From NCBI GenBank assembly GCA_964057225.1, contig OZ059894.1:3224001-3288000 (forward strand): a DNA stretch of 64,000 nt. Reading direction: 5' to 3'. Of this stretch, positions 1-64,000 are shown piece after piece (the first letter of the stretch is position 1; every line of letters starts with the position of its first letter). A model generated the notes under the pieces. It ran no database searches and was not told where the DNA came from. It saw nothing but the letters and a program-made list of their open reading frames with translations. The DNA comes from Auanema rhodensis. Lineage: Eukaryota; Animalia; Nematoda. The position numbers were made by a program, and so were the translations under genes.

Positions 1-351
1 AAAATGCACCGAGATATCAACTGATATAAGTTCACACTTATATCCTAGATTTTCACCCCGAAGAATTAATTTTTTCGTTGAATAACATTGTCCATCGTCT
101 TTGCCTTGAAAAAAGGAATCTAAAAACATCTACTTTTTGCTAAATTATTTTGAAATTTTTCGAAAAAATTTTTGTCAAAATGTTTTTGGAAGCAATGTTG
201 AGTGTACATGGAAACTCAACATACACTAATGCATCATTTTTCAAACGATCATAACTAATTTTTGTATTAAGCGTTTTTCAATGTAGTATAGTGCATTCGA
301 TGCGGATTTTCAAGCTGCGTCGATCTGTGTTATCAGATTTGCGCTAGCTTA
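1..351 (+). repeat. Representative satellite monomer (351 bp, about 31% GC; phase arbitrary)
   Basis: 1-351 is repeated essentially identically from 352. Hand count gives 110 G+C in 351, with many A4-A7/T4-T7 tracts. Confidence 0.97.
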
Positions 352-3300
352 AAAATGCACCGAGATATCAACTGATATAAGTTCACACTTATATCCTAGA
401 TTTTCACCCCGAAGAATTAATTTTTTCGTTGAATAACATTGTCCATCGTCTTTGCCTTGAAAAAAGGAATCTAAAAACATCTACTTTTTGCTAAATTATT
501 TTGAAATTTTTCGAAAAAATTTTTGTCAAAATGTTTTTGGAAGCAATGTTGAGTGTACATGGAAACTCAACATACACTAATGCATCATTTTTCAAACGAT
601 CATAACTAATTTTTGTATTAAGCGTTTTTCAATGTAGTATAGTGCATTCGATGCGGATTTTCAAGCTGCGCCGATCTGTGTTATCAGATTTGCGCTAGCT
701 TAAAAATGCACCGAGATATCAACTGATATAAGTTCACACTTATATCCTCGATTTTCACCCTGAAGAATTAATTTTTTCGTTGAATAACATTGTCCATCGT
801 CTTTGCCTTGAAAAAAGGAATCTAAAAACATCTACTTTTTGCTAAATTATTTTGAAATTTTTCGAAAAAATTTTTGTCAAAATGTTTTTGGAAGCAATGT
901 TGAGTGTACATGGAAAATCAACATACACTAATGCATCATTTTTCAAACGATCATAACTAATTTTTGTATTAAGCGTTTTTCAATGTAGTATAGTGCATTC
1001 GATGCGGATTTTTAAGCTGCGTCGATCTGTGTTATCCGATTTGCGCTAGCTGAAAAATGCACCGAGATATCAACTGATATAAGTTCACACTTATATCCTC
1101 GATTTTCACCCTGAAGAATTAATTTTTTCGTTGAATAACATTGTCCATCGTCTTTGCCTTGAAAAAAGGAATCTAAAAACATCTACTTTTTGCTAAATTA
1201 TTTTGAAATTTTTCGAAAAAATTTTTGTCAAAATGTTTTTGGAAGCAATGTTGAGTGTACATGGAAACTCAACATACACTAATGCATCATTTTTCAAACG
1301 ATCATAACTAATTTTTGTATTAAGCGTTTTTCAATGTAGTATAATGCATTCGATGCGGATTTTTAAGCTGCGTCGATCTGTGTTATCCGATTTGCGCTAG
1401 CTGAAAAATGCACCGAGATATCAACTGATATAAGTTCACACTTATATCCTCGATTTTCACCCTGAAGAATTAATTTTTTCGTTGAATAACATTGTCCATC
1501 GTCTTTGCCTTGAAAAAAGGAATCTAAAAACATCTACTTTTTGCTAAATTATTTTGAAATTTTTCGAAAAAATTTTTGTCAAAATGTTTTTGGAAGCAAT
1601 GTTGAGTGTACATGGAAACTCAACATACACTAATGTATCATTTTTCAAACGATCATAACTAATTTTTGTATTAAGCGTTTTTCAATGTAGTATAGTGCAT
1701 TCGATGCGGATTTTCAAGCTGCGCCGATCTGTGTTATCAGATTTGCGCTAGCTTAAAAATGCACCGAGATATCAACTGATATAAGTTCACACTTATATCC
1801 TCGATTTTCACCCTGAAGAATTAATTTTTTCGTTGAATAACATTGTCCATCGTCTTTGCCTTGAAAAAAGGAATCTAAAAACATCTACTTTTTGCTAAAT
1901 TATTTTGAAATTTTTCGAAAAAATTTTTGTCAAAATGTTTTTGGAAGCAATGTTGAGTGTACATGGAAACTCAACATACACTAATGCATCATTTTTCAAA
2001 CGATCATAACTAATTTTTGTATTAAGCGTTTTTCAATGTAGTATAGTGCATTCGATGCGGATTTTTAAGCTGCGTCGATCTGTGTTATCCGATTTGCGCT
2101 AGCTGAAAAATGCACCGAGATATCAACTGATATAAGTTCACACTTATATCCTCGATTTTCACCCTGAAGAATTAATTTTTTCGTTGAATAACATTGTCCA
2201 TCGTCTTTGCCTTGAAAAAAGGAATCTAAAAACATCTACTTTTTGCTAAATTATTTTGAAATTTTTCGAAAAAATTTTTGTCAAAATGTTTTTGGAAGCA
2301 ATGTTGAGTGTACATGGAAACTCAACATACACTAATGCATCATTTTTCAAACGATCATAACTAATTTTTGTATTAAGCGTTTTTCAATGTAGTATAGTGC
2401 ATTCGATGCGGATTTTCAAGCTGCGTCGATCTGTGTTATCAGATTTGCGCTAGCTTAAAAATGCACCGAGATATCAACTGATATAAGTTCACACTTATAT
2501 CCTAGATTTTCACCCCGAAGAATTAATTTTTTCGTTGAATAACATTGTCCATCGTCTTTGCCTTGAAAAAAGGAATCTAAAAACATCTACTTTTTGCTAA
2601 ATTATTTTGAAATTTTTCGAAAAAATTTTTGTCAAAATGTTTTTGGAAGCAATGTTGAGTGTACATGGAAACTCAACATACACTAATGCATCATTTTTCA
2701 AACGATCATAACTAATTTTTGTATTAAGCGTTTTTCAATGTAGTATAGTGCATTCGATGCGGATTTTCAAGCTGCGCCGATCTGTGTTATCAGATTTGCG
2801 CTAGCTTAAAAATGCACCGAGATATCAACTGATATAAGTTCACACTTATATCCTCGATTTTCACCCTGAAGAATTAATTTTTTCGTTGAATAACATTGTC
2901 CATCGTCTTTGCCTTGAAAAAAGGAATCTAAAAACATCTACTTTTTGCTAAATTATTTTGAAATTTTTCGAAAAAATTTTTGTCAAAATGTTTTTGGAAG
3001 CAATGTTGAGTGTACATGGAAAATCAACATACACTAATGCATCATTTTTCAAACGATCATAACTAATTTTTGTATTAAGCGTTTTTCAATGTAGTATAGT
3101 GCATTCGATGCGGATTTTTAAGCTGCGTCGATCTGTGTTATCCGATTTGCGCTAGCTGAAAAATGCACCGAGATATCAACTGATATAAGTTCACACTTAT
3201 ATCCTCGATTTTCACCCTGAAGAATTAATTTTTTCGTTGAATAACATTGTCCATCGTCTTTGCCTTGAAAAAAGGAATCTAAAAACATCTACTTTTTGCT

Positions 3301-4520
3301 AAATTATTTTGAAATTTTTCGAAAAAATTTTTGTCAAAATGTTTTTGGAAGCAATGTTGAGTGTACATGGAAACTCAACATACACTAATGCATCATTTTT
3401 CAAACGATCATAACTAATTTTTGTATTAAGCGTTTTTCAATGTAGTATAATGCATTCGATGCGGATTTTTAAGCTGCGTCGATCTGTGTTATCCGATTTG
3501 CGCTAGCTGAAAAATGCACCGAGATATCAACTGATATAAGTTCACACTTATATCCTCGATTTTCACCCTGAAGAATTAATTTTTTCGTTGAATAACATTG
3601 TCCATCGTCTTTGCCTTGAAAAAAGGAATCTAAAAACATCTACTTTTTGCTAAATTATTTTGAAATTTTTCGAAAAAATTTTTGTCAAAATGTTTTTGGA
3701 AGCAATGTTGAGTGTACATGGAAACTCAACATACACTAATGTATCATTTTTCAAACGATCATAACTAATTTTTGTATTAAGCGTTTTTCAATGTAGTATA
3801 GTGCATTCGATGCGGATTTTCAAGCTGCGCCGATCTGTGTTATCAGATTTGCGCTAGCTTAAAAATGCACCGAGATATCAACTGATATAAGTTCACACTT
3901 ATATCCTCGATTTTCACCCTGAAGAATTAATTTTTTCGTTGAATAACATTGTCCATCGTCTTTGCCTTGAAAAAAGGAATCTAAAAACATCTACTTTTTG
4001 CTAAATTATTTTGAAATTTTTCGAAAAAATTTTTGTCAAAATGTTTTTGGAAGCAATGTTGAGTGTACATGGAAACTCAACATACACTAATGCATCATTT
4101 TTCAAACGATCATAACTAATTTTTGTATTAAGCGTTTTTCAATGTAGTATAGTGCATTCGATGCGGATTTTTAAGCTGCGTCGATCTGTGTTATCCGATT
4201 TGCGCTAGCTGAAAAATGCACCGAGATATCAACTGATATAAGTTCACACTTATATCCTCGATTTTCACCCTGAAGAATTAATTTTTTCGTTGAATAACAT
4301 TGTCCATCGTCTTTGCCTTGAAAAAAGGAATCTAAAAACATCTACTTTTTGCTAAATTATTTTGAAATTTTTCGAAAAAATTTTTGTCAAAATGTTTTTG
4401 GAAGCAATGTTGAGTGTACATGGAAACTCAACATACACTAATGCATCATTTTTCAAACGATCATAACTAATTTTTGTATTAAGCGTTTTTCAATGTAGTA
4501 TAGTGCATTCGATGCGGATT
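60..4520 (+). repeat. Tandem 6-mer higher-order repeat (2106 bp x2) in a highly homogeneous subfamily
   Basis: Private SNPs recur at offset 2106: CCTAGAT 398/2504, GGAAAATC 917/3023, GTATAATG 1344/3450, AATGTATC 1636/3742. Confidence 0.88.
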
Positions 4521-6768
4521 TTTAAGCTGCGTCGATCTGTGTTATCCGATTTGCGCTAGCTGAAAAATGCACCGAGATATCAACTGATATAAGTTCACAC
4601 TTATATCCTCGATTTTCACCCTGAAGAATTAATTTTTTCGTTGAATAACATTGTCCATCGTCTTTGCCTTGAAAAAAGGAATCTAAAAACATCTACTTTT
4701 TGCTAAATTATTTTGAAATGTTTCGAAAAAATTTTTGTCAAAATGTTTTTGGAAGCAATGTTGAGTGTACATGGAAACTCAACATACACTAATGCATCAT
4801 TTTTCAAACGATCATAACTAATTTTTGTATTAAGCGTTTTTCAATGTAGTATAGTGCATTCGATGCGGATTTTTAAGCTGCGTCGATCTGTGTTATCCGA
4901 TTTGCGCTAGCTGAAAAATGCACCGAGATATCAACTGATATAAGTTCACACTTATATCCTCGATTTTCACCCTGAAGAATTAATTTTTTCGTTGAATAAC
5001 ATTGTCCATCGTCTTTGCCTTGAAAAAAGGAATCTAAAAACATCTACTTTTTGCTAAATTATTTTGAAATGTTTCGAAAAAATTTTTGTCAAAATGTTTT
5101 TGGAAGCAATGTTGAGTGTACATGGAAACTCAACATACACTAATGCATCATTTTTCAAACGATCATAACTAATTTTTGTATTAAGCGTTTTTCAATGTAG
5201 TATAGTGCATTCGATGCGGATTTTTAAGCTGCGTCGATCTGTGTTATCCGATTTGCGCTAGCTGAAAAATGCACCGAGATATCAACTGATATAAGTTCAC
5301 ACTTATATCCTCGATTTTCACCCTGAAGAATTAATTTTTTCGTTGAATAACATTGTCCATCGTCTTTGCCTTGAAAAAAGGAATCTAAAAACATCTACTT
5401 TTTGCTAAATTATTTTGAAATTTTTCGAAAAAATTTTTGTCAAAATGTTTTTGGAAGCAATGTTGAGTGTACATGGAAACTCAACATACACTAATGCATC
5501 ATTTTTCAAACGATCATAACTGATTTTTGTATTAAGCGTTTTTCAATGTAGTATAGTGCATTCGATGCGGATTTTCAAGCTGCGTCGATCTGTGTTATCA
5601 GATTTGCGCTAGCTTAAAAATGCACCGAGATATCAACTGATATAAGTTCACACTTATATCCTCGATTTTCACCCCGAAGAATTAATTTTTTCGTTGAATA
5701 ACATTGTCCATCGTCTTTGCCTTGAAAAAAGGAATCTAAAAACATCTACTTTTTGCTAAATTATTTCGAAATTTTTCGAAAAAATTTTTGTCAAAATGTT
5801 TTTGGAAGCAATGTTGAGTGTACATGGAAACTCAACATACACTAATGCATCATTTTTCAAACGATCATAACTAATTTTTGTATTAAGCGTTTCTCAATGA
5901 AGTATAGTGCATTCAATGCGGATTTTTGAGCTGCGTCGATCTGTGTTATCAAATTTGCGCTAGCTTAAGAATGCACCGAGATATCAACTGATATAGGTTC
6001 ACACTTATATCCTCGATTTTCACCCTGAAGAGTTTATTTTTTCGCTGAATAACATTGTCCATCATCTTCGCCTCGAAAAAAGAAATCTAAAAACATCTAC
6101 TTTTCGTGAAATTATTTTGAAATTTTCCGGGAAAATTTTTGTCAAAATGTTTTTGGAAGCAATGTTGAGTGTACATGGAAACTCAACATACAATAATGCA
6201 TCATTTTTCAAACGATCATAACTAATTTTTGTATTGAGCGTTTCTCAATGAAGTATAGTGCATTCAATGCGGATTTTTGAGCTGCGTCGATCTGTGTTAT
6301 CAAAATTGCGCTAGCTTTAGAATGCACCGAGATATCAACTGATATCGGTTCACACTTATATCCTCGATTTTCACCCTGAAGAGTTAATTTTTTCGCTGAA
6401 TAACATTGTCCATCGTCTTCGCCTTGAAAAAAAGAAATCTAAAAACATCTACTTTTCGTGAAATTATTTCGAAATTTTTCGGGAAAATTTTTGTCAAAAT
6501 GTTTTTGAAAGCAATGTTGAGTGTACATTGAAACTCAATATACAGTAATGCATCATTTTCCAAACGATCATAACTAATTTTTGTATTGAGCATTTCTTAA
6601 TGAAGTATAGTGCATTCGATGTGGATTTTTGTGCTGCGTCGATCTGTGTTATCAGATTTGCGCTAGCTTAAGAATGCACCGAGATATCAACTGATATAGG
6701 TTCACACTTATATCCTCGATTTTCACCCTGAAGAGTTTATTTTTTCGCTGAATAACATTGTCCATCGT

Positions 6769-9700
6769 CTTCCCCTTGAAAAAAGGAATCTAAAAACATC
6801 TACTTTTCGTGAAATTATTTCGAAATTTTTCGGGAAAATTTTTGTCAAAATGTTTTTGGAAGCAATGTTGAGTGTACATGGAAACTCAACATACACTAAT
6901 GCATCATTTTCCAAACGATCATAACTAATTTTTGTATTGAGCATTTCTTAATGAAGTATAGTGCATTCGATGTGGATTTTTGAGCTGCGTCGATCTGTGT
7001 TATCAGATTTGCGCTAGCTTAAGAATGCACCGAGATATCAACTGATATAGGTTCACACTTATATCCTCGATTTTCACCCTGAAGAATTAATTTTTTCGTT
7101 GAATAACATTGTCCATCGTCTTTGCCTTGAAAAAAGGAATCTAAAAACATCTACTTTTTGCTAAATTATTTTGAAATGTTTCGAAAAAATTTTTGTCAAA
7201 ATGTTTTTGGAAGCAATGTTGAGTGTACATGGAAACTCAACATACACTAATGCATCATTTTTCAAACGATCATAACTAATTTTTGTATTAAGCGTTTTTC
7301 AATGTAGTATAGTGCATTCGATGCGGATTTTTAAGCTGCGTCGATCTGTGTTATCCGATTTGCGCTAGCTGAAAAATGCACCGAGATATCAACTGATATA
7401 AGTTCACACTTATATCCTCGATTTTCACCCTGAAGAATTAATTTTTTCGTTGAATAACATTGTCCATCGTCTTTGCCTTGAAAAAAGGAATCTAAAAACA
7501 TCTACTTTTTGCTAAATTATTTTGAAATTTTTCGAAAAAATTGGAAGCAATGTTGAGTGTACATGGAAACTCAACATACACTAATGCATCATTTTTCAAA
7601 CGATCATAACTAATTTTTGTATTAAGCGTTTTTCAATGTAGTATAGTGCATTCGATGCGGATTTTCAAGCTGCGTCGATCTGTGTTATCAGATTTGCGCT
7701 AGCTTAAAAATGCACCGAGATATCAACTGATATAAGTTCACACTTATATCCTCGATTTTCACCCCGAAGAATTAATTTTTTCGTTGAATAACATTGTCCA
7801 TCGTCTTTGCCTTGAAAAAAGGAATCTAAAAACATCTACTTTTTGCTAAATTATTTCGAAATTTTTCGAAAAAATTTTTGTCAAAATGTTTTTGGAAGCA
7901 ATGTTGAGTGTACATGGAAACTCAACATACACTAATGCATCATTTTTCAAACGATCATAACTAATTTTTGTATTAAGCGTTTCTCAATGAAGTATAGTGC
8001 ATTCAATGCGGATTTTTGAGCTGCGTCGATCTGTGTTATCAAATTTGCGCTAGCTTAAGAATGCACCGAGATATCAACTGATATAGGTTCACACTTATAT
8101 CCTCGATTTTCACCCTGAAGAGTTTATTTTTTCGCTGAATAACATTGTCCATCATCTTCGCCTCGAAAAAAGAAATCTAAAAACATCTACTTTTCGTGAA
8201 ATTATTTTGAAATTTTCCGGGAAAATTTTTGTCAAAATGTTTTTGGAAGCAATGTTGAGTGTACATGGAAACTCAACATACAATAATGCATCATTTTTCA
8301 AACGATCATAACTAATTTTTGTATTGAGCGTTTCTCAATGAAGTATAGTGCATTCAATGCGGATTTTTGAGCTGCGTCGATCTGTGTTATCAAAATTGCG
8401 CTAGCTTTAGAATGCACCGAGATATCAACTGATATCGGTTCACACTTATATCCTCGATTTTCACCCTGAAGAGTTTATTTTTTCGCTGAATAACATTGTC
8501 CATCGTCTTCCCCTTGAAAAAAGGAATCTAAAAACATCTACTTTTCGTGAAATTATTTCGAAATTTTTCGGGAAAATTTTTGTCAAAATGTTTTTGGAAG
8601 CAATGTTGAGTGTACATGGAAACTCAACATACACTAATGCATCATTTTTCAAACGATCATAACTAATTTTTGTATTAAGCGTTTTTCAATGTAGTATAGT
8701 GCATTCGATGCGGATTTTTAAGCTGCGTCGATCTGTGTTATCCGATTTGCGCTAGCTGAAAAATGCACCGAGATATCAACTGATATAAGTTCACACTTAT
8801 ATCCTCGATTTTCACCCTGAAGAATTAATTTTTTCGTTGAATAACATTGTCCATCGTCTTTGCCTTGAAAAAAGGAATCTAAAAACATCTACTTTTTGCT
8901 AAATTATTTTGAAATTTTTCGAAAAAATTGGAAGCAATGTTGAGTGTACATGGAAACTCAACATACACTAATGCATCATTTTTCAAACGATCATAACTAA
9001 TTTTTGTATTAAGCGTTTTTCAATGTAGTATAGTGCATTCGATGCGGATTTTCAAGCTGCGTCGATCTGTGTTATCAGATTTGCGCTAGCTTAAAAATGC
9101 ACCGAGATATCAACTGATATAAGTTCACACTTATATCCTCGATTTTCACCCCGAAGAATTAATTTTTTCGTTGAATAACATTGTCCATCGTCTTTGCCTT
9201 GAAAAAAGGAATCTAAAAACATCTACTTTTTGCTAAATTATTTCGAAATTTTTCGAAAAAATTTTTGTCAAAATGTTTTTGGAAGCAATGTTGAGTGTAC
9301 ATGGAAACTCAACATACACTAATGCATCATTTTTCAAACGATCATAACTAATTTTTGTATTAAGCGTTTCTCAATGAAGTATAGTGCATTCAATGCGGAT
9401 TTTTGAGCTGCGTCGATCTGTGTTATCAAATTTGCGCTAGCTTAAGAATGCACCGAGATATCAACTGATATAGGTTCACACTTATATCCTCGATTTTCAC
9501 CCTGAAGAGTTTATTTTTTCGCTGAATAACATTGTCCATCATCTTCGCCTCGAAAAAAGAAATCTAAAAACATCTACTTTTCGTGAAATTATTTTGAAAT
9601 TTTCCGGGAAAATTTTTGTCAAAATGTTTTTGGAAGCAATGTTGAGTGTACATGGAAACTCAACATACACTAATGCATCATTTTTCAAACGATCATAACT

Positions 9701-12700
9701 AATTTTTGTATTGAGCGTTTCTCAATGAAGTATAGTGCATTCAATGCGGATTTTTGAGCTGCGTCGATCTGTGTTATCAAAATTGCGCTAGCTTTAGAAT
9801 GCACCGAGATATCAACTGATATCGGTTCACACTTATATCCTCGATTTTCACCCTGAAGAGTTAATTTTTTCGCTGAATAACATTGTCCATCGTCTTCGCC
9901 TTGAAAAAAAGAAATCTAAAAACATCTACTTTTCGTGAAATTATTTCGAAATTTTTCGGGAAAATTTTTGTCAAAATGTTTTTGAAAGCAATGTTGAGTG
10001 TACATTGAAACTCAATATACAGTAATGCATCATTTTCCAAACGATCATAACTAATTTTTGTACTGAGCATTTCTTAATGAAGTATAGTGCATTCGATGTG
10101 GATTTTTGTGCTGCGTCGATCTGTGTTATCAGATTTGCGCTAGCTTAAGAATGCACCGAGATATCAACTGATATAGGTTCACACTTATATCCTCGATTTT
10201 CACCCTGAAGAGTTTATTTTTTCGCTGAATAACATTGTCCATCGTCTTCCCCTTGAAAAAAGGAATCTAAAAACATCTACTTTTCGTGAAATTATTTCGA
10301 AATTTTTCGGGAAAATTTTTGTCAAAATGTTTTTGGAAGCAATGTTGAGTGTACATGGAAACTCAACATACACTAATGCATCATTTTCCAAACGATCATA
10401 ACTAATTTTTGTATTGAGCATTTCTTAATGAAGTATAGTGCATTCGATGTGGATTTTTGAGCTGCGTCGATCTGTGTTATCAGATTTGCGCTAGCTTAAG
10501 AATGCACCGAGATATCAACTGATATAGGTTCACACTTATATCCTCGATTTTCACCCTGAAGAGTTTATTTTTTCGCTGAATAACATTGTCCATCATCTTT
10601 GCCTCGAAAAAAGAAATCTAAAAACATCTACTTTTCGTGAAATTATTTTGAAATTTTCCGGGAAAATTTTTGTCAAAATGTTTTTGGAAGCAATGTTGAG
10701 TGTACATGGAAACTCAACATACACTAATGCATCATTTTTCAAACGATCATAACTAATTTTTGTATTGAGCATTTCTTAATGAAGTATAGTGCATTCGATG
10801 TAGATTTTTGAGCTGCGTCGATCTGTGTTATCAGATTTGCGCTAGCTTAAAAATGCACCGAGATATCAACTGATATATGTTCACACTTATATCCTCGATT
10901 TTCACCCTGAAGATTTACTTTTTTCGTTGAATAACATTGTCCATCGTTTTTGCCTTGAAAAAAGGAATCTAAAAACATCTACTTTTTGCTAAACTATTTT
11001 GAAATTTTTCGAAAAAATTTTTGTCAAAATGTTTTTGGAAGCAATGTTGAGTGTACATGGAAACTCAACATACACTAATGCATCATTTTTCAAACGATCA
11101 TAACTAATTTTTGTATTGAGCGTTTCTCAATGAAGTATAGTGCATTCAATGCGGATTTTTGAGCTGCGTCGATCTGTGTTATCAAAATTGCGCTAGCTCT
11201 AGAATGCACCGAGATATCAACTGATATCGGTTCACACTTATATCCTCGATTTTCACCCTGAAGAGTTATTTTTTTCGCTGAATAACATTGTCCATCGTCT
11301 TCGCCTTAAAAAAAGGAATCTAAAAACATCTACTTTTCGTGAAATTATTTCGAAATTTTTCGGGAAAATTTTTGTCAAAATGTTTTTGAAAGCAATGTTG
11401 AGTGTACATTGAAACTCAATATACAGTAATGCATCATTTTCCAAACGATCATAACTAATTTTTGTATTGAGCATTTCTTAATGAAGTATAGTGCATTCGA
11501 TGTGGATTTTTGAGCTGCGTCGATCTGTGTTATCAGATTTGCGCTAGCTTAAGAATGCACCGAGATATCAACTGATATAGGTTCACACTTATATCCTCGA
11601 TTTTCACCCTGAAGAGTTTATTTTTTCGCTGAATAACATTGTCCATCATCTTCGCCTCGAAAAAAGAAATCTAAAAACATCTACTTTTCGTGAAATTATT
11701 TTGAAATTTTCCGGGAAAATTTTTGTCAAAATGTTTTTGGAAGCAATGTTGAGTGTACATGGAAACTCAACATACACTAATGCATCATTTTTCAAACGAT
11801 CATAACTAATTTTTGTATTGAGCGTTTCTCAATTTAGTATAGTGCATTCAATGCGGATTTTTGAGCTGCGTCGATCTGTGTTATCAAATTTGCGCTAGCT
11901 TTAGAATGCACCGAGATATCAACTGATATCGGTTCACACTTATATCCTCGATTTTCACCCTGAAGAGTTAATTTTTTCGCTGAATAACATTGTCCATCGT
12001 CTTCGCCTTGAAAAAAGGAATCTAAAAACATCTACTTTTCGTGAAATTATTTCGAAATTTTTCGGGAAAATTTTTGTCAAAATGTTTTTGAAAGCAATGT
12101 TGAGTGTACATTGAAACTCAATATACAGTAATGCATCATTTTCCAAACGATCATAACTAATTTTTGTATTGAGCATTTCTTAATGAAGTATAGTGCATTC
12201 GATGTGATTTTTGAGCTGCGTCGATCTGTGTTATCAGATTTGCGCTAGCTTAAGAATGCACCGAGATATCAACTGATATAGGTTCACACTTATATCCTCG
12301 ATTTTCACCCTGAAGAGTTTATTTTTTCGCTGAATAACAATGTCCATCATCTTCGCCTCGAAAAAAGAAACCTAAAAACATCTACTTTTCGTGAAATTAT
12401 TTTGAAATTTTCCGGGAAAATTTTTGTCAAAATGTTTTTGGAAGCAATGTTGAGTGTACATGGAAACTCAACATACAATAATGCATCATTTTTCAAACGA
12501 TCATAACTAATTTTTGTATTGAGCATTTCTTAATGAAGTATAGTGCATTCGATGTAGATTTTTGAGCTGCGTCGATCTGTGTTATCAGATTTGCGCCAGC
12601 TTAAGAATGCACCGAGATATCAACTGATATATGTTCACACTTATATCCTCGATTTTCACCCTGAAGATTTACTTTTTTCATTGAATAACATTGTCCATCG

Positions 12701-15700
12701 TTTTTGCCTTGAAAAAAGGAATCTAAAAACATCTACTTTTTGCTAAACTATTTTGAAATTTTTCGAAAAAATTTTTGTCAAAATGTTTTTGGAAGCAATG
12801 TTGAGTGTACATGAAAACTCAACATAAAACTAATGCATCATTTTTCAAACGATCATAACTAATTTTTGTATTGAGCGTTTCTCAATGAAGTATAGTGCAT
12901 TCAATGCGGATTTTTGAGCTGCGTCGATCTGTATTATCAAATTTGCGCTAGCTTTAGAATGCACCGAGATATCAACTGATATCGGTTCACACTTATATCC
13001 TCGATTTTCACCCTGAAGAGTTAATTTTTTCGCTGAATAACATTGTCCATCGTCTTTGCCTTGAAAAAAGGAATCTAAAAACATCTACTTTTCGTGAAAT
13101 TATTTCGAAATTTTTCGGGAAAATTTTTGTCAAAATGTTTTTGAAAGCAATGTTGAGTGTACATTGAAACTCAATATACAGTAATGCATCATTTTCCAAA
13201 CGATCATAACTAATTTTTGTATTGAGCATTTCTTAATGAAGTATAGTGCATTCGATGTGGATTTTTGAGCTGCGTCGATCTGTGTTATCAGATTTGCGCT
13301 AGCTTAAGAATGCACCGAGATATCAACTGATATAGGTTCACACTTATATCCTCGATTTTCACCCTGAAGAGTTTATTTTTTCGCTGAATAACATTGTCCA
13401 TCATCTTCGCCTCGAAAAAAGAAATCTAAAAACATCTACTTTTCGTGAAATTATATTGAAATTTCCCGGGAAAATTTTTGTCAAAATGTTTTTGGAAGCA
13501 ATGTTGAGTGTACATGGAAACTCAACATACAATAATGCATCATTTTTCAAACGATCATAACTAATTTTTGTATTGAGCATTTCTCAATGAAGTATAGTGC
13601 ATTCGATGTAGATTTTTGAGCTGCGTCGATCTGTGTTATCAGATTTGCGCTAGCTTAAAAATGCACCGAGATATCAACTGATATATGTTCACACTTATAT
13701 CCTCGATTTTCACCCTGGAGAGTTTATTTTTTCGCTGAATAACATTGTCCATCATCTTCGCCTCGAAAAAGGGAATCTAAAAACATCTACTTTTTGTGAA
13801 ATTATTTTGAAATTTTTCGGGAAAATTTTTGTCAAAATGTTTTTGGAAGCAATGTTGAGTGTACATTGAAACTCAATATACAGTAATGCATCATTTTCCA
13901 AACGATCATAACTAATTTTTGTATTGAGCATTTCTTAATGAAGTATAGTGCATTCGATGTGGATTTTTGTGCTGCGTCGATCTGTGTTATCAGATTTGCG
14001 CTAGCTTAAGAATGCACCGAGATATCAACTGATATAGGTTCACACTTATATCCTCGATTTTCACCCTGAAGAGTTTATTTTTTCGCTGAATAACATTGTC
14101 CATCGTCTTCCCCTTGAAAAAAGGAATCTAAAAACATCTACTTTTCGTGAAATTATTTCGAAATTTTTCGGGAAAATTTTTGTCAAAATGTTTTTGGAAG
14201 CAATGTTGAGTGTACATGGAAACTCAACATACACTAATGCATCATTTTTCAAACGATCATAACAAATTTTTGTATTGAGCATTTCTTAATGAAGTATAGT
14301 GCATTCGATGTAGATTTTTGAGCTGCGTCGATCTGTGTTATCAGATTTGCGCTAGCTTAAAAATGCACCGAGATATCAACTGATATATGTTCACACTTAT
14401 ATCCTCGATTTTCACCCTGAAGATTTACTTTTTTCGTTGAATAACATTGTCCATCGTTTTTGCCTTGAAAAAAGGAATCTAAAAACATCTACTTTTTGCT
14501 AAACTATTTTGAAATTTTTCGAAAAAATTTTTGTCAAAATGTTTTTGGAAGCAATGTTGAGTGTACATGGAAACTCAACATACACTAATGCATCATTTTT
14601 CAAACGATCATAACTAATTTTTGTATTGAGCGTTTCTCAATGAAGTATAGTGCATTCAATGCGGATTTTTGAGCTGCGTCGATCTGTGTTATCAAAATTG
14701 CGCTAGCTCTAGAATGCACCGAGATATCAACTGATATCGGTTCACACTTATATCCTCGATTTTCACCCTGAAGAGTTAATTTTTTCGCTGAATAACATTG
14801 TCCATCGTCTTCGCCTTAAAAAAAGGAATCTGAAAACATCTACTTTTCGTGAAATTATTTCGAAATTTTTCGGGAAAATTTTTGTCAAAATGTTTTTGGA
14901 AGCAATGTTGAGTGTACATTGAAACTCAATATACAGTAATGCATCATTTTCCAAACGATCATAACTAATTTTTGTGTTGAGCATTTCTTAATGAAGTATA
15001 GTGCATTCGATGTGGATTTTTGTGCTGCGTCGATCTGTGTTATCAGATTTGCGCTAGCTTAAGAATGCACCGAGATATCAACTGATATAGGTTCACACTT
15101 ATATCCTCGATTTTCACCCTGAAGAGTTTATTTTTTCGCTGAATAACATTGTCCATCGTCTTCCCCTTGAAAAAAAGAATCTAAAAACATCTACTTTTCG
15201 TGAAATTATTTCGAAATTTTTCGGGAAAATTTTTGTCAAAATGTTTTTGGAAGCAATGTTGAGTGTACATGGAAACTCAACATACACTAATGCATCATTT
15301 TTCAAACGATCATAACTAATTTTTGTATTGAGCATTTCTTAATGAAGTATAGTGCATTCGATGTAGATTTTTGAGCTGCGTCGATCTGTGTTATCAGATT
15401 TGCGCTAGCTTAAAAATGCACCGAGATATCAACTGATATATGTTCACACTTATATCCTCGATTTTCACCCTGAAGATTTACTTTTTTCGTTGAATAACAT
15501 TGTCCATCGTTTTTGCCTTGAAAAAAGGAATCTAAAAACATCTACTTTTTGCTAAACTATTTTGAAATTTTTCGAAAAAATTTTTGTCAAAATGTTTTTG
15601 GAAGCAATGTTGAGTGTACATGGAAACTCAACATACACTAATGCATCATTTTTCAAACGATCATAACTAATTTTTGTATTGAGCGTTTCTCAATGAAGTA

Positions 15701-18700
15701 TAGTGCATTCAATGCGGATTTTTGAGCTGCGTCGATCTGTGTTATCAAAATTGCGCTAGCTCTAGAATGCACCGAGATATCAACTGATATCGGTTCACAC
15801 TTATATCCTCGATTTTCACCCTGAAGAGTTAATTTTTTCGCTGAATAACATTGTCCATCGTCTTCGCCTTAAAAAAAGGAATCTAAAAACATCTACTTTT
15901 CGTGAAATTATTTCGAAATTTTTCGGGAAAATTTTTGTCAAAATGTTTTTGAAAGCAATGTTGAGTGTACATTGAAACTCAATATACAGTAATGCATCAT
16001 TTTCCAAACGATCATAACTAATTTTTGTGTTGAGCATTTCTTAATGAAGTATAGTGCATTCGATGTGGATTTTTGTGCTGCGTCGATCTGTGTTATCAGA
16101 TTTGCGCTAGCTTAAGAATGCACCGAGATATCAACTGATATAGGTTCACACTTATATCCTCGATTTTCACCCTGAAGAGTTTATTTTTTCGCTGAATAAC
16201 ATTGTCCATCGTCTTCCCCTTGAAAAAAAGAATCTAAAAACATCTACTTTTCGTGAAATTATTTCGAAATTTTTCGGGAAAATTTTTGTCAAAATGTTTT
16301 TGGAAGCAATGTTGAGTGTACATGGAAACTCAACATACACTAATGCATCATTTTCCAAACGATCATAACTAATTTTTGTATTGAGCATTTCTTAATGAAG
16401 TATAGTGCATTCGATGTGGATTTTTGAGCTGCGTCGATCTGTGTTATCAGATTTGCGCTAGCTTAAGAATGCACCGAGATATCAACTGATATAGGTTCAC
16501 ACTTATATCCTCGATTTTCACCCTGAAGAGTTTATTTTATCGCTGAATAACATTGTCCATCATCTTCGCCTCGAAAAAAGAAATCTAAAAACATCTACTT
16601 TTCGTGAAATTATTTTGAAATTTTCCGGGAAAATTTTTGTCAAAATGTTTTTGGAAGCAATGTTGAGTGTACATGGAAACTCAACATACACTAATGCATC
16701 ATTTTTCAAACGATCATAACTAATTTTTGTATTGAGCGTTTCTCAATTTAGTATAGTGCATTCAATGCGGATTTTTGAGCTGCGTCGATCTGTGTTATCA
16801 AATTTGCGCTAGCTTTAGAATGCACCGAGATATCAACTGATATCGGTTCACACTTATATCCTCGATTTTCACCCTGAAGAGTTATTTTTTTCGCTGAATA
16901 ACATTGTCCATCGTCTTCGCCTTGAAAAAAGGAATCTAAAAACATCTACTTTTCGTGAAATTATTTCGAAATTTTTCGGGAAAATTTTTGTCAAAATGTT
17001 TTTGAAAGCAATGTTGAGTGTACATTGAAACTCAATATACAGTAATGCATCATTTTCCAAACGATCATAACTAATTTTTGTATTGAGCATTTCTTAATGA
17101 AGTATAGTGCATTCGATGTGATTTTTGAGCTGCGTCGATCTGTGTTATCAGATTTGCGCTAGCTTAAGAATGCACCGAGATATCAACTGATATAGGTTCA
17201 CACTTATATCCTCGATTTTCACCCTGAAGAGTTTATTTTTTCGCTGAATAACAATGTCCATCATCTTCGCCTCGAAAAAAGAAATCTAAAAACATCTACT
17301 TTTCGTGAAATTATTTTGAAATTTTCCGGGAAAATTTTTGTCAAAATGTTTTTGGAAGCAATGTTGAGTGTACATGGAAACTCAACATACAATAATGCAT
17401 CATTTTTCAAACGATCATAACTAATTTTTGTATTGAGCATTTCTTAATGAAGTATAGTGCATTCGATGTAGATTTTTGAGCTGCGTCGATCTGTGTTATC
17501 AGATTTGCGCCAGCTTAAGAATGCACCGAGATATCAACTGATATATGTTCACACTTATATCCTCGATTTTCACCCTGAAGATTTACTTTTTTCATTGAAT
17601 AACATTGTCCATCGTTTTTGCCTTGAAAAAAGGAATCTAAAAACATCTACTTTTTGCTAAACTATTTTGAAATTTTTCGAAAAAATTTTTGTCAAAATGT
17701 TTTTGGAAGCAATGTTGAGTGTACATGGAAACTCAACATACACTAATGCATCATTTTTCAAACGATCATAACTAATTTTTGTATTAAGCGTTTTTCAATG
17801 TAGTATAGTGCATTCGATGCGGATTTTTAAGCTGCGTCGATCTGTGTTATCAGATTTGCGCTAGCTTAAAAATGCACCGAGATATCAACTGATATAGGTT
17901 CACACTTATATCCTCGATTTTCACCCTGAAGAGTTTATTTTTTCGCTGAATAACAATGTCCATCATCTTCGCCTCGAAAAAAGAAATCTAAAAACATCTA
18001 CTTTTCGTGAAATTATTTTGAAATTTTCCGGGAAAATTTTTGCCAAAATGTTTTTGGAAGCAATGTTGAGTGTACATGGAAACTCAACATACAATAATGC
18101 ATCATTTTTCAAACGATCATAACTAATTTTTGTATTGAGCATTTCTTAATGAAGTATAGTGCATTCGATGTAGATTTTTGAGCTGCGTCGATCTGTGTTA
18201 TCAGATTTGCGCCAGCTTAAGAATGCACCGAGATATCAACTGATATATGTTCACACTTATATCCTCGATTTTCACCCTGAAGATTTACTTTTTTCATTGA
18301 ATAACATTGTCCATCGTCTTCCCCTTGAAAAAAGGAATCTAAAAACATCTACTTTTCGTGAAATTATTTCGAAATTTTTCGGGAAAATTTTTGTCAAAAT
18401 GTTTTTGGAAGCAATGTTGAGTGTACATGGAAACTCAACATACACTAATGCATCATTTTCCAAACGATCATAACTAATTTTTGTATTGAGCATTTCTTAA
18501 TGAAGTATAGTGCATTCGATGTGGATTTTTGAGCTGCGTCGATCTGTGTTATCAGATTTGCGCTAGCTTAAGAATGCACCGAGATATCAACTGATATAGG
18601 TTCACACTTATATCCTCGATTTTCACCCTGAAGAATTAATTTTTTCGTTGAATAACATTGTCCATCGTCTTTGCCTTGAAAAAAGGAATCTAAAAACATC

Positions 18701-21700
18701 TACTTTTTGCTAAATTATTTTGAAATGTTTCGAAAAAATTTTTGTCAAAATGTTTTTGGAAGCAATGTTGAGTGTACATGGAAACTCAACATACACTAAT
18801 GCATCATTTTTCAAACGATCATAACTAATTTTTGTATTAAGCGTTTTTCAATGTAGTATAGTGCATTCGATGCGGATTTTTAAGCTGCGTCGATCTGTGT
18901 TATCCGATTTGCGCTAGCTGAAAAATGCACCGAGATATCAACTGATATAAGTTCACACTTATATCCTCGATTTTCACCCTGAAGAATTAATTTTTTCGTT
19001 GAATAACATTGTCCATCGTCTTTGCCTTGAAAAAAGGAATCTAAAAACATCTACTTTTTGCTAAATTATTTTGAAATTTTTCGAAAAAATTGGAAGCAAT
19101 GTTGAGTGTACATGGAAACTCAACATACACTAATGCATCATTTTTCAAACGATCATAACTAATTTTTGTATTAAGCGTTTTTCAATGTAGTATAGTGCAT
19201 TCGATGCGGATTTTCAAGCTGCGTCGATCTGTGTTATCAGATTTGCGCTAGCTTAAAAATGCACCGAGATATCAACTGATATAAGTTCACACTTATATCC
19301 TCGATTTTCACCCCGAAGAATTAATTTTTTCGTTGAATAACATTGTCCATCGTCTTTGCCTTGAAAAAAGGAATCTAAAAACATCTACTTTTTGCTAAAT
19401 TATTTCGAAATTTTTCGAAAAAATTTTTGTCAAAATGTTTTTGGAAGCAATGTTGAGTGTACATGGAAACTCAACATACACTAATGCATCATTTTTCAAA
19501 CGATCATAACTAATTTTTGTATTAAGCGTTTCTCAATGAAGTATAGTGCATTCAATGCGGATTTTTGAGCTGCGTCGATCTGTGTTATCAAATTTGCGCT
19601 AGCTTAAGAATGCACCGAGATATCAACTGATATAGGTTCACACTTATATCCTCGATTTTCACCCTGAAGAGTTTATTTTTTCGCTGAATAACATTGTCCA
19701 TCATCTTCGCCTCGAAAAAAGAAATCTAAAAACATCTACTTTTCGTGAAATTATTTTGAAATTTTCCGGGAAAATTTTTGTCAAAATGTTTTTGGAAGCA
19801 ATGTTGAGTGTACATGGAAACTCAACATACAATAATGCATCATTTTTCAAACGATCATAACTAATTTTTGTATTGAGCGTTTCTCAATGAAGTATAGTGC
19901 ATTCAATGCGGATTTTTGAGCTGCGTCGATCTGTGTTATCAAAATTGCGCTAGCTTTAGAATGCACCGAGATATCAACTGATATCGGTTCACACTTATAT
20001 CCTCGATTTTCACCCTGAAGAGTTAATTTTTTCGCTGAATAACATTGTCCATCGTCTTCGCCTTGAAAAAAAGAAATCTAAAAACATCTACTTTTCGTGA
20101 AATTATTTCGAAATTTTTCGGGAAAATTTTTGTCAAAATGTTTTTGAAAGCAATGTTGAGTGTACATTGAAACTCAATATACAGTAATGCATCATTTTCC
20201 AAACGATCATAACTAATTTTTGTACTGAGCATTTCTTAATGAAGTATAGTGCATTCGATGTGGATTTTTGTGCTGCGTCGATCTGTGTTATCAGATTTGC
20301 GCTAGCTTAAGAATGCACCGAGATATCAACTGATATAGGTTCACACTTATATCCTCGATTTTCACCCTGAAGAGTTTATTTTTTCGCTGAATAACATTGT
20401 CCATCGTCTTCCCCTTGAAAAAAGGAATCTAAAAACATCTACTTTTCGTGAAATTATTTCGAAATTTTTCGGGAAAATTTTTGTCAAAATGTTTTTGGAA
20501 GCAATGTTGAGTGTACATGGAAACTCAACATACACTAATGCATCATTTTCCAAACGATCATAACTAATTTTTGTATTGAGCATTTCTTAATGAAGTATAG
20601 TGCATTCGATGTGGATTTTTGAGCTGCGTCGATCTGTGTTATCAGATTTGCGCTAGCTTAAGAATGCACCGAGATATCAACTGATATAGGTTCACACTTA
20701 TATCCTCGATTTTCACCCTGAAGAGTTTATTTTTTCGCTGAATAACATTGTCCATCATCTTTGCCTCGAAAAAAGAAATCTAAAAACATCTACTTTTCGT
20801 GAAATTATTTTGAAATTTTCCGGGAAAATTTTTGTCAAAATGTTTTTGGAAGCAATGTTGAGTGTACATGGAAACTCAACATACACTAATGCATCATTTT
20901 TCAAACGATCATAACTAATTTTTGTATTGAGCATTTCTTAATGAAGTATAGTGCATTCGATGTAGATTTTTGAGCTGCGTCGATCTGTGTTATCAGATTT
21001 GCGCTAGCTTAAAAATGCACCGAGATATCAACTGATATATGTTCACACTTATATCCTCGATTTTCACCCTGAAGATTTACTTTTTTCGTTGAATAACATT
21101 GTCCATCGTTTTTGCCTTGAAAAAAGGAATCTAAAAACATCTACTTTTTGCTAAATTATTTCGAAATTTTTCGAAAAAATTTTTGTCAAAATGTTTTTGG
21201 AAGCAATGTTGAGTGTACATGGAAACTCAACATACACTAATGCATCATTTTTCAAACGATCATAACTAATTTTTGTATTGAGCGTTTCTCAATGAAGTAT
21301 AGTGCATTCAATGCGGATTTTTGAGCTGCGTCGATCTGTGTTATCAAAATTGCGCTAGCTCTAGAATGCACCGAGATATCAACTGATATCGGTTCACACT
21401 TATATCCTCGATTTTCACCCTGAAGAGTTATTTTTTTCGCTGAATAACATTGTCCATCGTCTTCGCCTTAAAAAAAGGAATCTAAAAACATCTACTTTTC
21501 GTGAAATTATTTCGAAATTTTTCGGGAAAATTTTTGTCAAAATGTTTTTGAAAGCAATGTTGAGTGTACATTGAAACTCAATATACAGTAATGCATCATT
21601 TTCCAAACGATCATAACTAATTTTTGTATTGAGCATTTCTTAATGAAGTATAGTGCATTCGATGTGGATTTTTGAGCTGCGTCGATCTGTGTTATCAGAT

Positions 21701-27700: not shown

Positions 27701-28479
27701 TGATATATGTTCACACTTATATCCTCGATTTTCACCCTGAAGATTTACTTTTTTCATTGAATAACATTGTCCATCGTTTTTGCCTTGAAAAAAGGAATCT
27801 AAAAACATCTACTTTTTGCTAAACTATTTTGAAATTTTTCGAAAAAATTTTTGTCAAAATGTTTTTGGAAGCAATGTTGAGTGTACATGGAAACTCAACA
27901 TACACTAATGCATCATTTTTCAAACGATCATAACTAATTTTTGTATTAAGCGTTTTTCAATGTAGTATAGTGCATTCGATGCGGATTTTTAAGCTGCGTC
28001 GATCTGTGTTATCAGATTTGCGCTAGCTTAAAAATGCACCGAGATATCAACTGATATAGGTTCACACTTATATCCTCGATTTTCACCCTGAAGAGTTTAT
28101 TTTTTCGCTGAATAACAATGTCCATCATCTTCGCCTCGAAAAAAGAAATCTAAAAACATCTACTTTTCGTGAAATTATTTTGAAATTTTCCGGGAAAATT
28201 TTTGCCAAAATGTTTTTGGAAGCAATGTTGAGTGTACATGGAAACTCAACATACAATAATGCATCATTTTTCAAACGATCATAACTAATTTTTGTATTGA
28301 GCATTTCTTAATGAAGTATAGTGCATTCGATGTAGATTTTTGAGCTGCGTCGATCTGTGTTATCAGATTTGCGCCAGCTTAAGAATGCACCGAGATATCA
28401 ACTGATATATGTTCACACTTATATCCTCGATTTTCACCCTGAAGATTTACTTTTTTCATTGAATAACATTGTCCATCGT
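6769..28479 (+). repeat. Large tandem duplication: copy 1 ~6769-18317 (11,549 bp, 33 monomers), copy 2 ~18318-28479 (10,162 bp, 29 monomers)
   Basis: ORF and SNP patterns repeat at offset 10,162 (9861/20023, 12845/23007, 14061/24223, 16869/27031) and at 11,549 for the first monomers (6723/18272; 17-bp deletion 7541/19090). 10,162 = 29x351 - 17. Confidence 0.9.
7533..7548 (+). other. 17-bp deletion junction (334-bp monomer variant); also at ~8928 and ~19090
   Basis: CGAAAAAATTGGAAGC versus canonical CGAAAAAATTTTTGTCAAAATGTTTTTGGAAGC. Confidence 0.92.
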
Positions 28480-30020: not shown

Positions 30021-30046
30021 CATTTTTCTCGATTTTCACACTGAAG
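30021..30046 (+). other. 154-bp deletion junction (197-bp monomer variant); first of 9 copies
   Basis: CATTTTTC|TCGATTTTCACACTGAAG joins monomer position 242 to position 46 of the next unit. The same junction is at ~31278 (+) and, reverse-complemented, at ~36580, 37128, 38730, 39278, 58078, 60381 and 63386. Confidence 0.93.
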
Positions 30047-61910: not shown

Positions 61911-64000
61911 CCTTTTTTCAAGGCGAAGACGACGGACAATGTTATTCAACGTAAAAATTAGTTCTTTAGGGTGAAAATCGAGGATATAGGTGTGAACTTA
62001 TATCAGTTGATATCTCGGTGCATTTTTAAGCTAGCGCAAATCTGATAACACAGATCGACGCAGCTTAAAAATCCGCATCGAATGCACTATACTACATTAA
62101 GAAACGCTTAATATAAAAATTAGTTATGATCGTTTGAAAAATGATGCATTAGTGTATGTTGAGTTTCCATGTACACTCAACATTGCTTCCAAAAACATTT
62201 TGACAAAAATTTTCCCGGAAAATTTCAAAATAATTTCACGAAAAGTAGATGTTTTTAGATTTCTTTTTTCGAGGCGAAGATGATGGACAATGTTATTCAG
62301 CGAAAAAATAAACTCTTCAGGGTGAAAATCGAGGATATAAGTGTGAACAAATATCAGTTGATATCTCGGTGCATTTTTAAGCTAGCGCAAATCTGATAAC
62401 ACAGATCGACGCAGCTCAAAAATCTACATCGAATGCACTATACTTCATTAAGAAATGCTCAATACAAAAATTAGTTATGATCGTTTGGAAAATGATGCAT
62501 TACTGTATGTTGAGTTTCCATGTACACTCAACATTGCTTCCAAAAACATTTTGACAAAAATTTTTTCGAAAAATTTCAAAATAGTTTAGCAAAAAGTAGA
62601 TGTTTTTAGATTCCTTTTTTCAAGGCAAAAACGATGGACAATGTTATTCAACGAAAAAAGTAAATCTTCAGGGTGAAAATCGAGGATATAAGTGTGAACA
62701 TATATCAGTTGATATCTCGGTGCATTTTTAAGCTAGCGCAAATCTGATAACACAGATCGACGCAGCTCAAAAATCTACATCGAATGCACTATACTTCATT
62801 AAGAAATGCTCAATACAAAAATTAGTTATGATCGTTTGGAAAATGATGCATTACTGTATGTTGAGTTTCAATGTACACTCAACATTGCTTTCAAAAACAT
62901 TTTGACAAAAATTTTCCCGAAAAATTTCGAAATAATTTCACGAAAAGTAGATGTTTTTAGATTCCTTGTTTCAAGGCGAAGACGATAGACAATGTTATTC
63001 AGCGAAAAAATTAACTCTCCAGGGTGAAAATCGAGGATATAAGTGTGAACAAATATCAGTTGATATCTCGGTGCATTTTTAAGCTAGCGCAAATCTGATC
63101 ACACAGATCGACGCAGCTCAAAAATCTACATCGAATGCACTATACTTCATTAAGAAATGCTCAATACAAAAATTAGTTATGATCGTTTGGAAAATGATGC
63201 ATTACTGTATGTTGAGTTTCAATGTACACTCAACATTGCTTCCAAAAACATTTTGACAAAATTTTTCCCGAAAAATTTCAAAATAATTTCACGAAAAGTA
63301 GATGTTTTTAGATTCCTTTTTTCAAGGCGAAGACGATGGACAATGTTATTCAGCGAAAAAATTAACTCTTCAGTGTGAAAATCGAGAAAAATGATGCATT
63401 ACTGTATGTTGAGTTTCAATGTACACTCAACATTGCTTCCAAAAACATTTTGACAAAAATTTTCCCGAAAAATTTCAAAATAATTTCACGAAAAGTAGAT
63501 GTTTTTAGATTTCTTTTTTCGAGGCGAAGATGATGGACAATGTTATTCAGCGAAAAAATAAACTCTTCAGGGTGAAAATCGAGGATATAAGTGTGAACAT
63601 ATATCAGTTGATATCTCGGTGCATTTTTAAGCTAGCGCAAATCTGATAACACAGATCGACGCAGCTCAAAAATCTACATCGAATGCATTATACTTCATTA
63701 AGAAATGCTCAATACCAAAATTAGTTATGATCGTTTGGAAAATGATGCATTACTGTATGTTGAGTTTCAATGTACACTCAACATTGCTTTCAAAAACATT
63801 TTGACAAAAATTTTCCCGAAAAATTTCGAAATAATTTCACGAAAAGTAGATGTTTTTAGATTCCTTGTTTCAAGGCGAAGACGATAGACAATGTTATTCA
63901 GCGAAAAAATTAACTCTCCAGGGTGAAAATCGAGGATATAAGTGTGAACCGATATCAGTTGATATCTCGGTGCATTTTTAAGCTAGCGCAAATATGATAA

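Follow-up and report, generated by a model that had tools for sequence, protein, structure and literature searches.

A single reversal of orientation splits the window, that is, the whole 64,000-nt stretch of A. rhodense DNA analysed here, into two opposed arms of one 351-bp satellite. The flip is probably a scar left within the probable AT-2 satellite when a one-ended repair or replication event was sealed by end joining, and it probably has no dedicated function. The scar looks old.

The satellite accounts for 99.7% of the window by monomer matching, and the 163 bases lying outside its consensus all fall in gaps of 1-4 nt. A reference monomer yields 91 plus-strand matches up to 31,378 followed by 96 minus-strand matches from 31,382, and TRF delimits a 351-bp array at 3-31,278 and an array of the reverse-complement consensus at 31,382-63,386. 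The AT skew passes from about -0.08 to about +0.08 across 30-32 kb of the window. The same monomer family is found in opposite orientations on both sides of the flip, and the opposed arms are separated by 3 nt (CGT). As the window contains neither N nor telomere repeat anywhere and its gaps measure only 1-4 nt, foreign DNA is absent between the arms, in agreement with the original observation of a single flip at about 31,380 with nothing foreign in between. Only one phase break is detected in the plus arm by monomer matching. The window is devoid of ORFs longer than 101 aa, and the comparison to RNA families returned a single snoRNA-like match, below threshold (20 bits for a cut-off of 50).

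Judged from its sequence, the strand switch appears to belong to a class with precedents in human satellite DNA and not to be a centromere device. In T2T-CHM13, a 1.7-Mb inversion is present in the alpha-satellite array of chromosome 1, and more than 200 inversion breakpoints occur in HSat3B5 and beta satellite (bioRxiv 10.1101/2021.07.12.452052). The human switches share with the present one a single satellite family in opposed orientations, abrupt breakpoints and a large number per genome, whereas A. rhodense differs in being holocentric, in probably losing this germline-only DNA from the soma and in having an unrelated monomer. The flip alone is an ordinary satellite rearrangement and its value is descriptive.

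Genomic setting and orientation domains

The germline assembly of A. rhodense amounts to 180.9 Mb; its terminal repeat blocks, built on the autosomes from units of 167-504 nt, are eliminated from the soma (bioRxiv 10.64898/2026.08.27.747507). A FISH probe published for AT-1 produces 138,553 matches with a 176-bp period, starting at C1:134 on the contig that holds the window, and the 351-bp repeat alternates with AT-1 across C1:2.75-4.2 Mb. Several large contigs also carry the 351-bp satellite at either end, and a conserved 22-mer of it occurs 102,579 times (53,266 plus and 49,313 minus) in the genome. As the repeat occurs alongside AT-1 in multi-megabase terminal blocks and has a unit within the reported size range, it is probably AT-2. 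The 351-bp unit was rejected as a dimer of AT-1 or of its own halves, the similarity being no better than that of shuffles in either case.

Both arms exceed 30 kb, as originally claimed, and the domains to which they belong extend far past the window. The plus domain occupies C1:2,811,057-3,255,378 (about 444 kb) and the minus domain continues to C1:3,504,511 (about 249 kb), extents that were judged from 10-kb samples at a density of about 10-40%, through which small inverted blocks could escape. Minus arrays flank the plus domain on both sides. At its left boundary (C1:2,811,056/7), a minus array ending at monomer position 315 is joined to a plus array starting at position 187.

Five partial scans of the genome revealed 24 other flip loci in the 351-bp satellite, which extrapolates roughly to a genome-wide total of the order of 100 and suggests roughly one flip per 200-350 kb, each orientation domain measuring a few hundred kb. 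The geometry, position and sequence of the junctions vary between sites. Some flips have been amplified within larger units, and another junction is present in three copies with diverged flanks (94-99% identity in one comparison, 98.4-99.0% in another), so flips are inherited features of this genome. The junction k-mer of the window was searched for in the assembly, as had been proposed, and the 28-mer occurs once in the whole genome assembly. The suggestion of a recurrent organising unit is therefore borne out as far as the abundance of flips is concerned, but not with regard to a common junction. The main text of the genome paper, as far as a search by term shows, mentions neither the orientation of its repeats nor flips (bioRxiv 10.64898/2026.08.27.747507). 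These data suggest that the germline-only multi-megabase blocks of A. rhodense are mosaics of orientation domains with sub-arrays of different ages, in which homogenisation through unequal exchange is confined to tracts delimited by flips. Such inversions may come at little cost where chromosomes are holocentric and the DNA escapes somatic constraint, in which case the blocks could suit measurement of the rate of satellite rearrangement and of its repair routes.

Sub-arrays and symmetry of the arms

The plus arm begins with an A-type sub-array (1-5,300, plus strand), as established by matching multi-kb blocks to genome samples; the identity of these blocks is 99.4-99.9% with the sample adjoining the window on the left and 97-99% with samples as distant as 1 Mb. 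A seamless transition (approximately 5,301-9,500, plus), with continuous monomer phase and no junction, leads to B-type sequence, which extends on the plus strand from 9,501 to 31,378, ending at monomer position 143, and on the minus strand from 31,382, starting at monomer position 323, to 64,000. Sub-type assignment thus gives B-type on either side of the flip. The B-type plus stretch is 95-97% identical to the minus arm and to the minus samples L020-L022, compared with 93-94% to A-type. A marker of B-type is provided by a 549-bp variant, a monomer with positions 43-240 duplicated, of which B-type sequence yielded 25 minus copies and A-type sequence, over about 150 kb, none. Seven of its joints lie in the minus arm (36,580; 37,128; 38,730; 39,278; 58,078; 60,381; 63,386). 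The only two plus copies (29,789-31,378, joints at 30,028 and 31,278) are both within 1.4 kb of the junction, and the second is truncated by the flip 100 bp past its joint. The plus arm also contains a direct tandem duplication (8,573-28,479), in which 8,573-18,317 recurs as 18,735-28,479, the 9,745-bp copies differing by 3 mismatches and having a period of 10,162 bp (29 monomers). This duplication is recent.

The window had been described as an imperfect inverted repeat of at least 62 kb, which holds at the level of the monomer family but not as a mirror, since no register stands out. Monomers average 93.9% identity when compared between arms and 94.2 and 94.3% when compared within them. In the mirror register they reach 94.4%, the overall mean being 93.9%; among diagonals, the highest mirror score (94.8%) is exceeded by the highest score of the non-physical control (95.2%). 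Inverted matches of at least 1 kb between the arms attain a maximum of 96.8-97.0%, direct duplicates within one arm up to 99.97%. The best inverted match between the last 1.5 kb of the plus arm and the first 8 kb of the minus arm is 95-96%, equal to background, and cross-arm identity equals same-arm identity at matched distance. A mirror palindrome was accordingly rejected, no signal above background having emerged from alignments of the whole arms, from monomer matrices or from the 1.5 kb next to the junction: the flip lacks the symmetry of a true palindrome, and near-identical mirror copies do not adjoin the junction. Arm-diagnostic variants were discarded as well, the top frequency difference being 0.48 between arms versus 0.44 between the halves of one arm.

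Origin of the flip

Fold-back inverted duplications arise in breakage-fusion-bridge and DUP-TRP/INV-DUP events. They have in common with the present flip a head-to-head junction that is the only illegitimate one and a spacer of less than one monomer, but they display near-identical mirror copies by definition, whereas only background identity is observed here. A fold-back origin of the flip is suggested by the sub-type adjacency and the single junction alone, the mirror copy having gone. A local origin is supported by the B-type sequence on both sides, by the 549-bp variant near the junction and by the equality of cross-arm and same-arm identity. A broken or stalled end within the B-type sub-array would have switched strands, and end joining would have sealed the switch, leaving a 3-nt filler apparently templated locally. 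At its far end, the inverted tract would then have merged in register with the neighbouring plus array via homology, which would account for the presence of a single illegitimate junction. Later unequal exchange, of which the 9.75-kb duplication is an example, and sequence turnover may have erased the mirror symmetry. We infer the repair pathway, the order of these events and the absence of function. As an expected consequence, unequal crossing-over would be unable to homogenise across the flip.

The filler (CGT, 31,379-31,381) reads TCGTGA with its flanks and is a direct copy of a TCGTGA located 8 nt upstream. Only 1.8% of 6-mers have a direct copy within 15 nt, which speaks for local templating, but 11.6% recur on either strand within 30 nt, which leaves the argument for a templated filler weak. 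In C. elegans, end joining by polymerase theta leaves templated-insertion scars at deletions of 50-200 bp (PMC4032859). This junction resembles such scars in having minimal homology at the joint and a short filler that may copy sequence a few nt away; they were however described for deletions and not for strand switches, and the match of the A. rhodense filler is short and could be due to chance. The junction of a flip on contig C3 carries a 12-nt filler, a partial copy of AAAATGTT located downstream in the plus arm.

A two-break inversion or inverted insertion, with the flip of the window and that at C1:2,811,056/7 as the two ends of one 444-kb event, is a less likely origin. It is favored by the minus arrays on either side of the plus domain, by arms that draw on one variant pool without mirror symmetry, as an inverted pre-existing array would, and by the fact that both minus arms flanking the plus domain abut the same 9-mer GATCGACGC (positions 323-315), placed at the end of the left minus arm and at the start of the right one. 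The chance of such a coincidence is nevertheless estimated at about 5-10%, and the left junction is 315/187 instead of the reciprocal 144/324 expected from a clean inversion. No complementary-phase junction (minus ending at 144 joined to plus starting at 324) was found on C1 by a pattern scan for the predicted spacing, and a clean balanced inversion with the flip at C1:2.811 Mb was rejected on account of the mismatched monomer phases. Moreover, the flip lies inside B-type sequence, but the left junction (C1:2,811,056/7) and the far end of the minus domain are A-type, so that an inversion of the whole domain would have had to split B-type sequence. A breakpoint hotspot at GATCGACGC, which three junctions abut, was likewise rejected as not significant: about two independent events are involved, because the left junction on C1 and that on C3 are possibly related by a 31-bp deletion.

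An assembly artefact, either a chimeric read or a wrong hifiasm path in repeats, is improbable. The junction 28-mer does occur only once, HiFi coverage of repeat regions is only about 29-fold, and a 9.75-kb duplication with 99.97% identity lies 2.9 kb from the junction, which makes the region hard to assemble. The absence of N excludes a scaffold join, however, and a missed-adapter fold-back would give a perfect mirror where the arms reach 97% at most. The same local sub-type is present on both sides, which would be rare for a random chimera, and flips are frequent, some of them in several diverged copies.

Functional readings and hairpin potential

Dyad symmetry had been put forward as a means of specifying centromeres. 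A. rhodense is a rhabditid nematode, and rhabditid chromosomes are holocentric (bioRxiv 10.1101/2020.09.04.283127); as the array moreover probably belongs to the terminal blocks eliminated from the soma, the centromere frame is probably not the relevant one. It is also very unlikely that flips are kept because hairpin RNA or non-B DNA marks the blocks for H3K27me3, elimination or meiotic pairing: a long hairpin is predicted in silico at the flip, flips are numerous and sometimes amplified in larger units, and H3K27me3-rich lagging DNA comes before elimination (bioRxiv 10.64898/2026.08.27.747507), but junction positions and sequences are site-specific, that of the window being unique, and the satellite strands are about equally abundant genome-wide, so that antisense pairing would need no flip. 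In Ascaris, siRNAs do not target the major eliminated satellite and eliminated DNA is without CENP-A (PMC12633612). Elimination sites in A. rhodense are set by a 29-nt palindromic SFE motif with telomere addition, of which only 15 high-scoring sites exist in all eliminated DNA (bioRxiv 10.64898/2026.08.27.747507); its location within the monomer was rejected, with 15 sites for about 100,000 monomer copies. Still more improbable is the specific proposal that flips are a selected feature whose read-through hairpin RNAs give rise to small RNAs and to H3K27me3 across the blocks ahead of their elimination; if true, it would add to animal DNA elimination a small-RNA-guided step comparable to that of ciliates.

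The predicted large hairpin can form in silico. As single-stranded DNA, the segment 31,072-31,871 folds into an imperfect hairpin whose loop (31,279-31,464) measures about 185 nt and whose stem, according to the dot-bracket output, has about 300 bp. The potential of the structure would be limited by this loop and by a stem that is about 94% matched; in yeast, inverted repeats provoke rearrangements less readily the further apart and the more divergent they are (PMC10164571). The folding energy is -243.6 kcal/mol (z = -28), compared with -94.3 kcal/mol (z = -3.4) for the control.

Structure of the orientation switch

The 351-bp array was detected by Tandem Repeats Finder at window 3-31,278 and its reverse-complement consensus at 31,382-63,386. 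The 91 + strand BLAST matches to a reference monomer (window 3-353) extend up to 31,378, and its 96 - strand matches begin at 31,382. Over the interval 30-32 kb, the AT skew reverses its sign. The satellite consensus covers the window except for 163 bases, every one of which lies in a gap of 1-4 nt. The original prediction, in which two arms of one satellite face each other across a single flip without foreign DNA in between, is therefore a correct description of the array. Neither N nor telomere repeats were found across the 64-kb window. At the flip (31,378/31,382), the + arm stops at monomer position 143 and is followed by a CGT filler (3 nt) and by the - arm from position 323, a junction denoted 143|323.

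A palindrome at the flip was rejected. Mean monomer identity amounts to 94.2% and 94.3% inside the arms versus 93.9% across them, and to 94.4% in exact mirror register. The top mirror diagonal (94.8%) scores below the top diagonal (95.2%) of an order-preserving control, a physically meaningless register. The final 1.5 kb of the + arm and the initial 8 kb of the - arm are 95-96% identical, which is background, and the highest inverted match of at least 1 kb anywhere between the arms reaches 96.8-97.0%. Monomers are as similar across arms as within one arm when physical distance is matched, and no arm-specific variants were found among those of the two arms. Pairs at least 99% identical within 4 kb represent 7-10% of same-arm pairs versus 0 of 32 cross-arm pairs, a lack that, in this small sample, would fit unequal exchange blocked at the flip. 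The + arm also contains a direct tandem duplication, 8,573-18,317 being repeated at 18,735-28,479 (9,745 bp, 3 mismatches, period of 10,162 bp or 29 monomers). This pair reflects either unequal exchange in the very recent past or a region that is difficult to assemble.

Chromosomal setting and sub-arrays

The window occupies C1:3,224,001-3,288,000 of an assembly that comprises 180,911,798 bp in 112 contigs; HiFi reads assembled with hifiasm, together with Hi-C, are described as the basis of the A. rhodense germline assembly (180.9 Mb), and the terminal repeats AT-1 and AT-2 as forming nearly whole autosome ends (bioRxiv 10.64898/2026.08.27.747507). The AT-1 FISH probe of that study matches the genome 138,553 times with a 176-bp period, from C1:134, and so establishes its identity. 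Genome-wide, a conserved 22-mer of the 351-bp repeat has 53,266 forward and 49,313 reverse occurrences; it is carried by 158 of the 168 window monomers, which corresponds to ~109,000 monomers or ~38 Mb. On C1, C3 and C7 the repeat is located toward both ends, on C5 at one end, and on C6 at 19.4 Mb as well as at one end. Because of this contig-end location and of its alternation with AT-1 along C1, it is probably AT-2.

The layout of C1 was established from 10-kb samples and from the sequence of the left junction. The 351-bp repeat is in - orientation at 2.75 Mb, turns to + at C1:2,811,056/7 without filler (- ends at 315, + starts at 187), remains + from 2.81 to 3.255 Mb, turns to - at the window flip (~3.255 Mb) and continues as such to 3,504,511. 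The window arms are parts of these domains of ~444 kb (+) and ~249 kb (-). Immediately to the right, 1.6 kb of AT-1 (-) at C1:3,504,504-3,506,130 (4,504-6,130 of sample L025) turns to + at about 3,506,128, so AT-1 arrays also have strand switches. AT-1 is + at 3.6-3.7 Mb, as is the 351-bp repeat at 3.8-4.2 Mb, and polarity toward the chromosome end is not constant among the C1 samples. Two samples, L023 (C1:3,400,001-3,410,000) and L024 (C1:3,450,001-3,460,000), hold 27% and 46% of 351-bp repeat, the remainder of which may be another repeat or an inserted element.

Two sub-arrays can be distinguished. A-type sequence (samples L013-L019, L025 and L028-L032, and window 1 to about 5,300) has common blocks of at least 2 kb at 97-99.9% in either orientation. 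B-type sequence (the remaining window and L020-L022) is 95-98% identical internally and only 93-94% to A-type; no break of monomer phase was found at the A-to-B change (window about 5.3-9.5 kb). B-type is diagnosed by a 549-bp variant monomer in which duplication of positions 43-240 adds 198 bp; 25 - copies of this variant occur in B-type and none in about 150 kb of A-type. Those of the window's - arm are located at 36,580, 37,128, 38,730, 39,278, 58,078, 60,381 and 63,386, and the variant is also present in L020-L022. Only two copies are on the + strand (window 30,018 and 31,268, with variant joints at 30,028 and 31,278). The sub-typing of both sides therefore places the flip inside B-type, 22-26 kb of B(+) facing at least 105 kb of B(-). 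In the A-type samples (C1:2.75-4.2 Mb), neighbouring monomers differ by ~5%, yet 2-10 kb blocks are found again over more than 1.4 Mb, in both orientations, with 97-99% identity, a sequence pattern that points to recent large-scale amplification of multi-monomer blocks without simple higher-order period.

Other switches in the genome

The 28-mer of the window junction occurs once genome-wide, even with 2 mismatches permitted. A scan of five 31-nt spacing windows for a 16-mer with its reverse complement downstream retrieved 8 convergent and 16 divergent flip loci on C1, C3, C5, C6 and C7. Assuming uniform breakpoint phases, these windows represent ~16% and 23% of possible spacings, and a rough extrapolation suggests ~100-130 flips, or one per ~200-350 kb of satellite. 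One divergent C3 junction (- ends at 314, 12-nt filler AAAAATGTTATG, + starts at 168) exists in three copies at 0.16, 22.97 and 23.57 Mb (L033, C3:159,335-162,607; L034, C3:22,966,049-22,969,321; L035, C3:23,568,023-23,571,295). The left-end copy is 99% identical, inverted, to one right-end copy, suggesting exchange between the two ends of C3. Identical junctions are also found three times on C7 (870,110, 886,945 and 897,816; 11-17 kb spacing), three times on C3 (1,666,167, 1,671,367 and 1,675,163; 4-5 kb) and twice on C6 (1,367,937 and 1,372,351; 4.4 kb). At such spacings of 4-17 kb, the short inverted segments are parts of tandemly amplified larger units, and the repetition of junctions implies that flips are inherited and amplified along with their surroundings. 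Junction geometry is site-specific (143|323 in the window, 315|187, 314|168 with the 12-nt filler, and 84|273). The 9-mer GATCGACGC (positions 323-315) borders the - arm at three junctions (window 31,382-31,390; left C1 junction L036, 1,324-1,332; L033, 1,550-1,558) and may reflect common descent of the junctions or a weakly preferred breakpoint site, the events being too few for significance.

Origin and functional potential

The flip would have arisen by a one-ended strand-switch event within B-type sequence, the other end of the inverted tract being resolved by homology into the + array. Such an event fits better because there is only one illegitimate junction, because the same local sub-type lies on both sides and because the sole + 549-bp variants sit at the joint; as the mirror is missing, it would predate the later turnover that removed it. 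An assembly artefact is improbable: coverage is only ~29-fold in repeat regions, but the join holds no N and is not a scaffold gap, a missed-adapter fold-back would yield a perfect mirror whereas the arms are not mirror copies and the junction lacks fold-back mirror copies, and like is joined to like, with B-type on both sides. A clean balanced inversion with the 2.811-Mb flip as partner is rejected, since the predicted 144|324 junction was found neither at that left boundary nor in the C1 spacing scan, and since inversion of the whole domain would need B-type sequence to be split.

As to the joining step of the one-ended event, the window filler and its flanks read TCGTGA, with a second copy 8 nt upstream (chance 1.8% by strict and 11.6% by loose count), and the C3 filler is a partial copy of AAAATGTT downstream in its + arm. 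Both resemble the templated fillers reported for polymerase theta end joining in C. elegans (PMC4032859), a likeness that is no more than suggestive.

The complete human genome offers well-documented strand switches within satellite arrays (bioRxiv 10.1101/2021.07.12.452052). The window flip is of the same kind and constitutes a new instance in a different and unusual setting, a worm with holocentric chromosomes and DNA that only its germline keeps; by term search, no description of repeat orientation was retrieved from the main text of the A. rhodense genome paper (bioRxiv 10.64898/2026.08.27.747507). Since Rhabditid nematodes are reported to be holocentric (bioRxiv 10.1101/2020.09.04.283127), a regional-centromere reading, and with it centromere specification by dyad symmetry, is not applicable.

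Folded as single-stranded DNA, 800 nt around the flip give a predicted -243.6 kcal/mol (z = -28), versus -94.3 kcal/mol (z = -3.4) for a one-orientation control. The predicted hairpin has a stem of roughly 300 bp, ~94% matched, and a loop of ~185 nt. In yeast, spacing and divergence of inverted repeats are reported to lower their rearrangement power, long single-stranded regions excepted (PMC10164571). In Ascaris, siRNAs are described as not targeting the major eliminated satellite (PMC12633612), and elimination sites of A. rhodense as set by a 29-nt motif rare in eliminated DNA (bioRxiv 10.64898/2026.08.27.747507). Given the imperfect hairpin, the absence of such siRNAs in Ascaris and the rarity of the motif, the flip is treated here as a neutral scar. 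Smaller dyads are built into each monomer at positions about 193-220 (ATGTTGAGT...ACTCAACAT, 9-bp stem; e.g. window 195-222) and about 11-24 (ATATCA-AC-TGATAT), and both are predicted to form small hairpins in the control fold.
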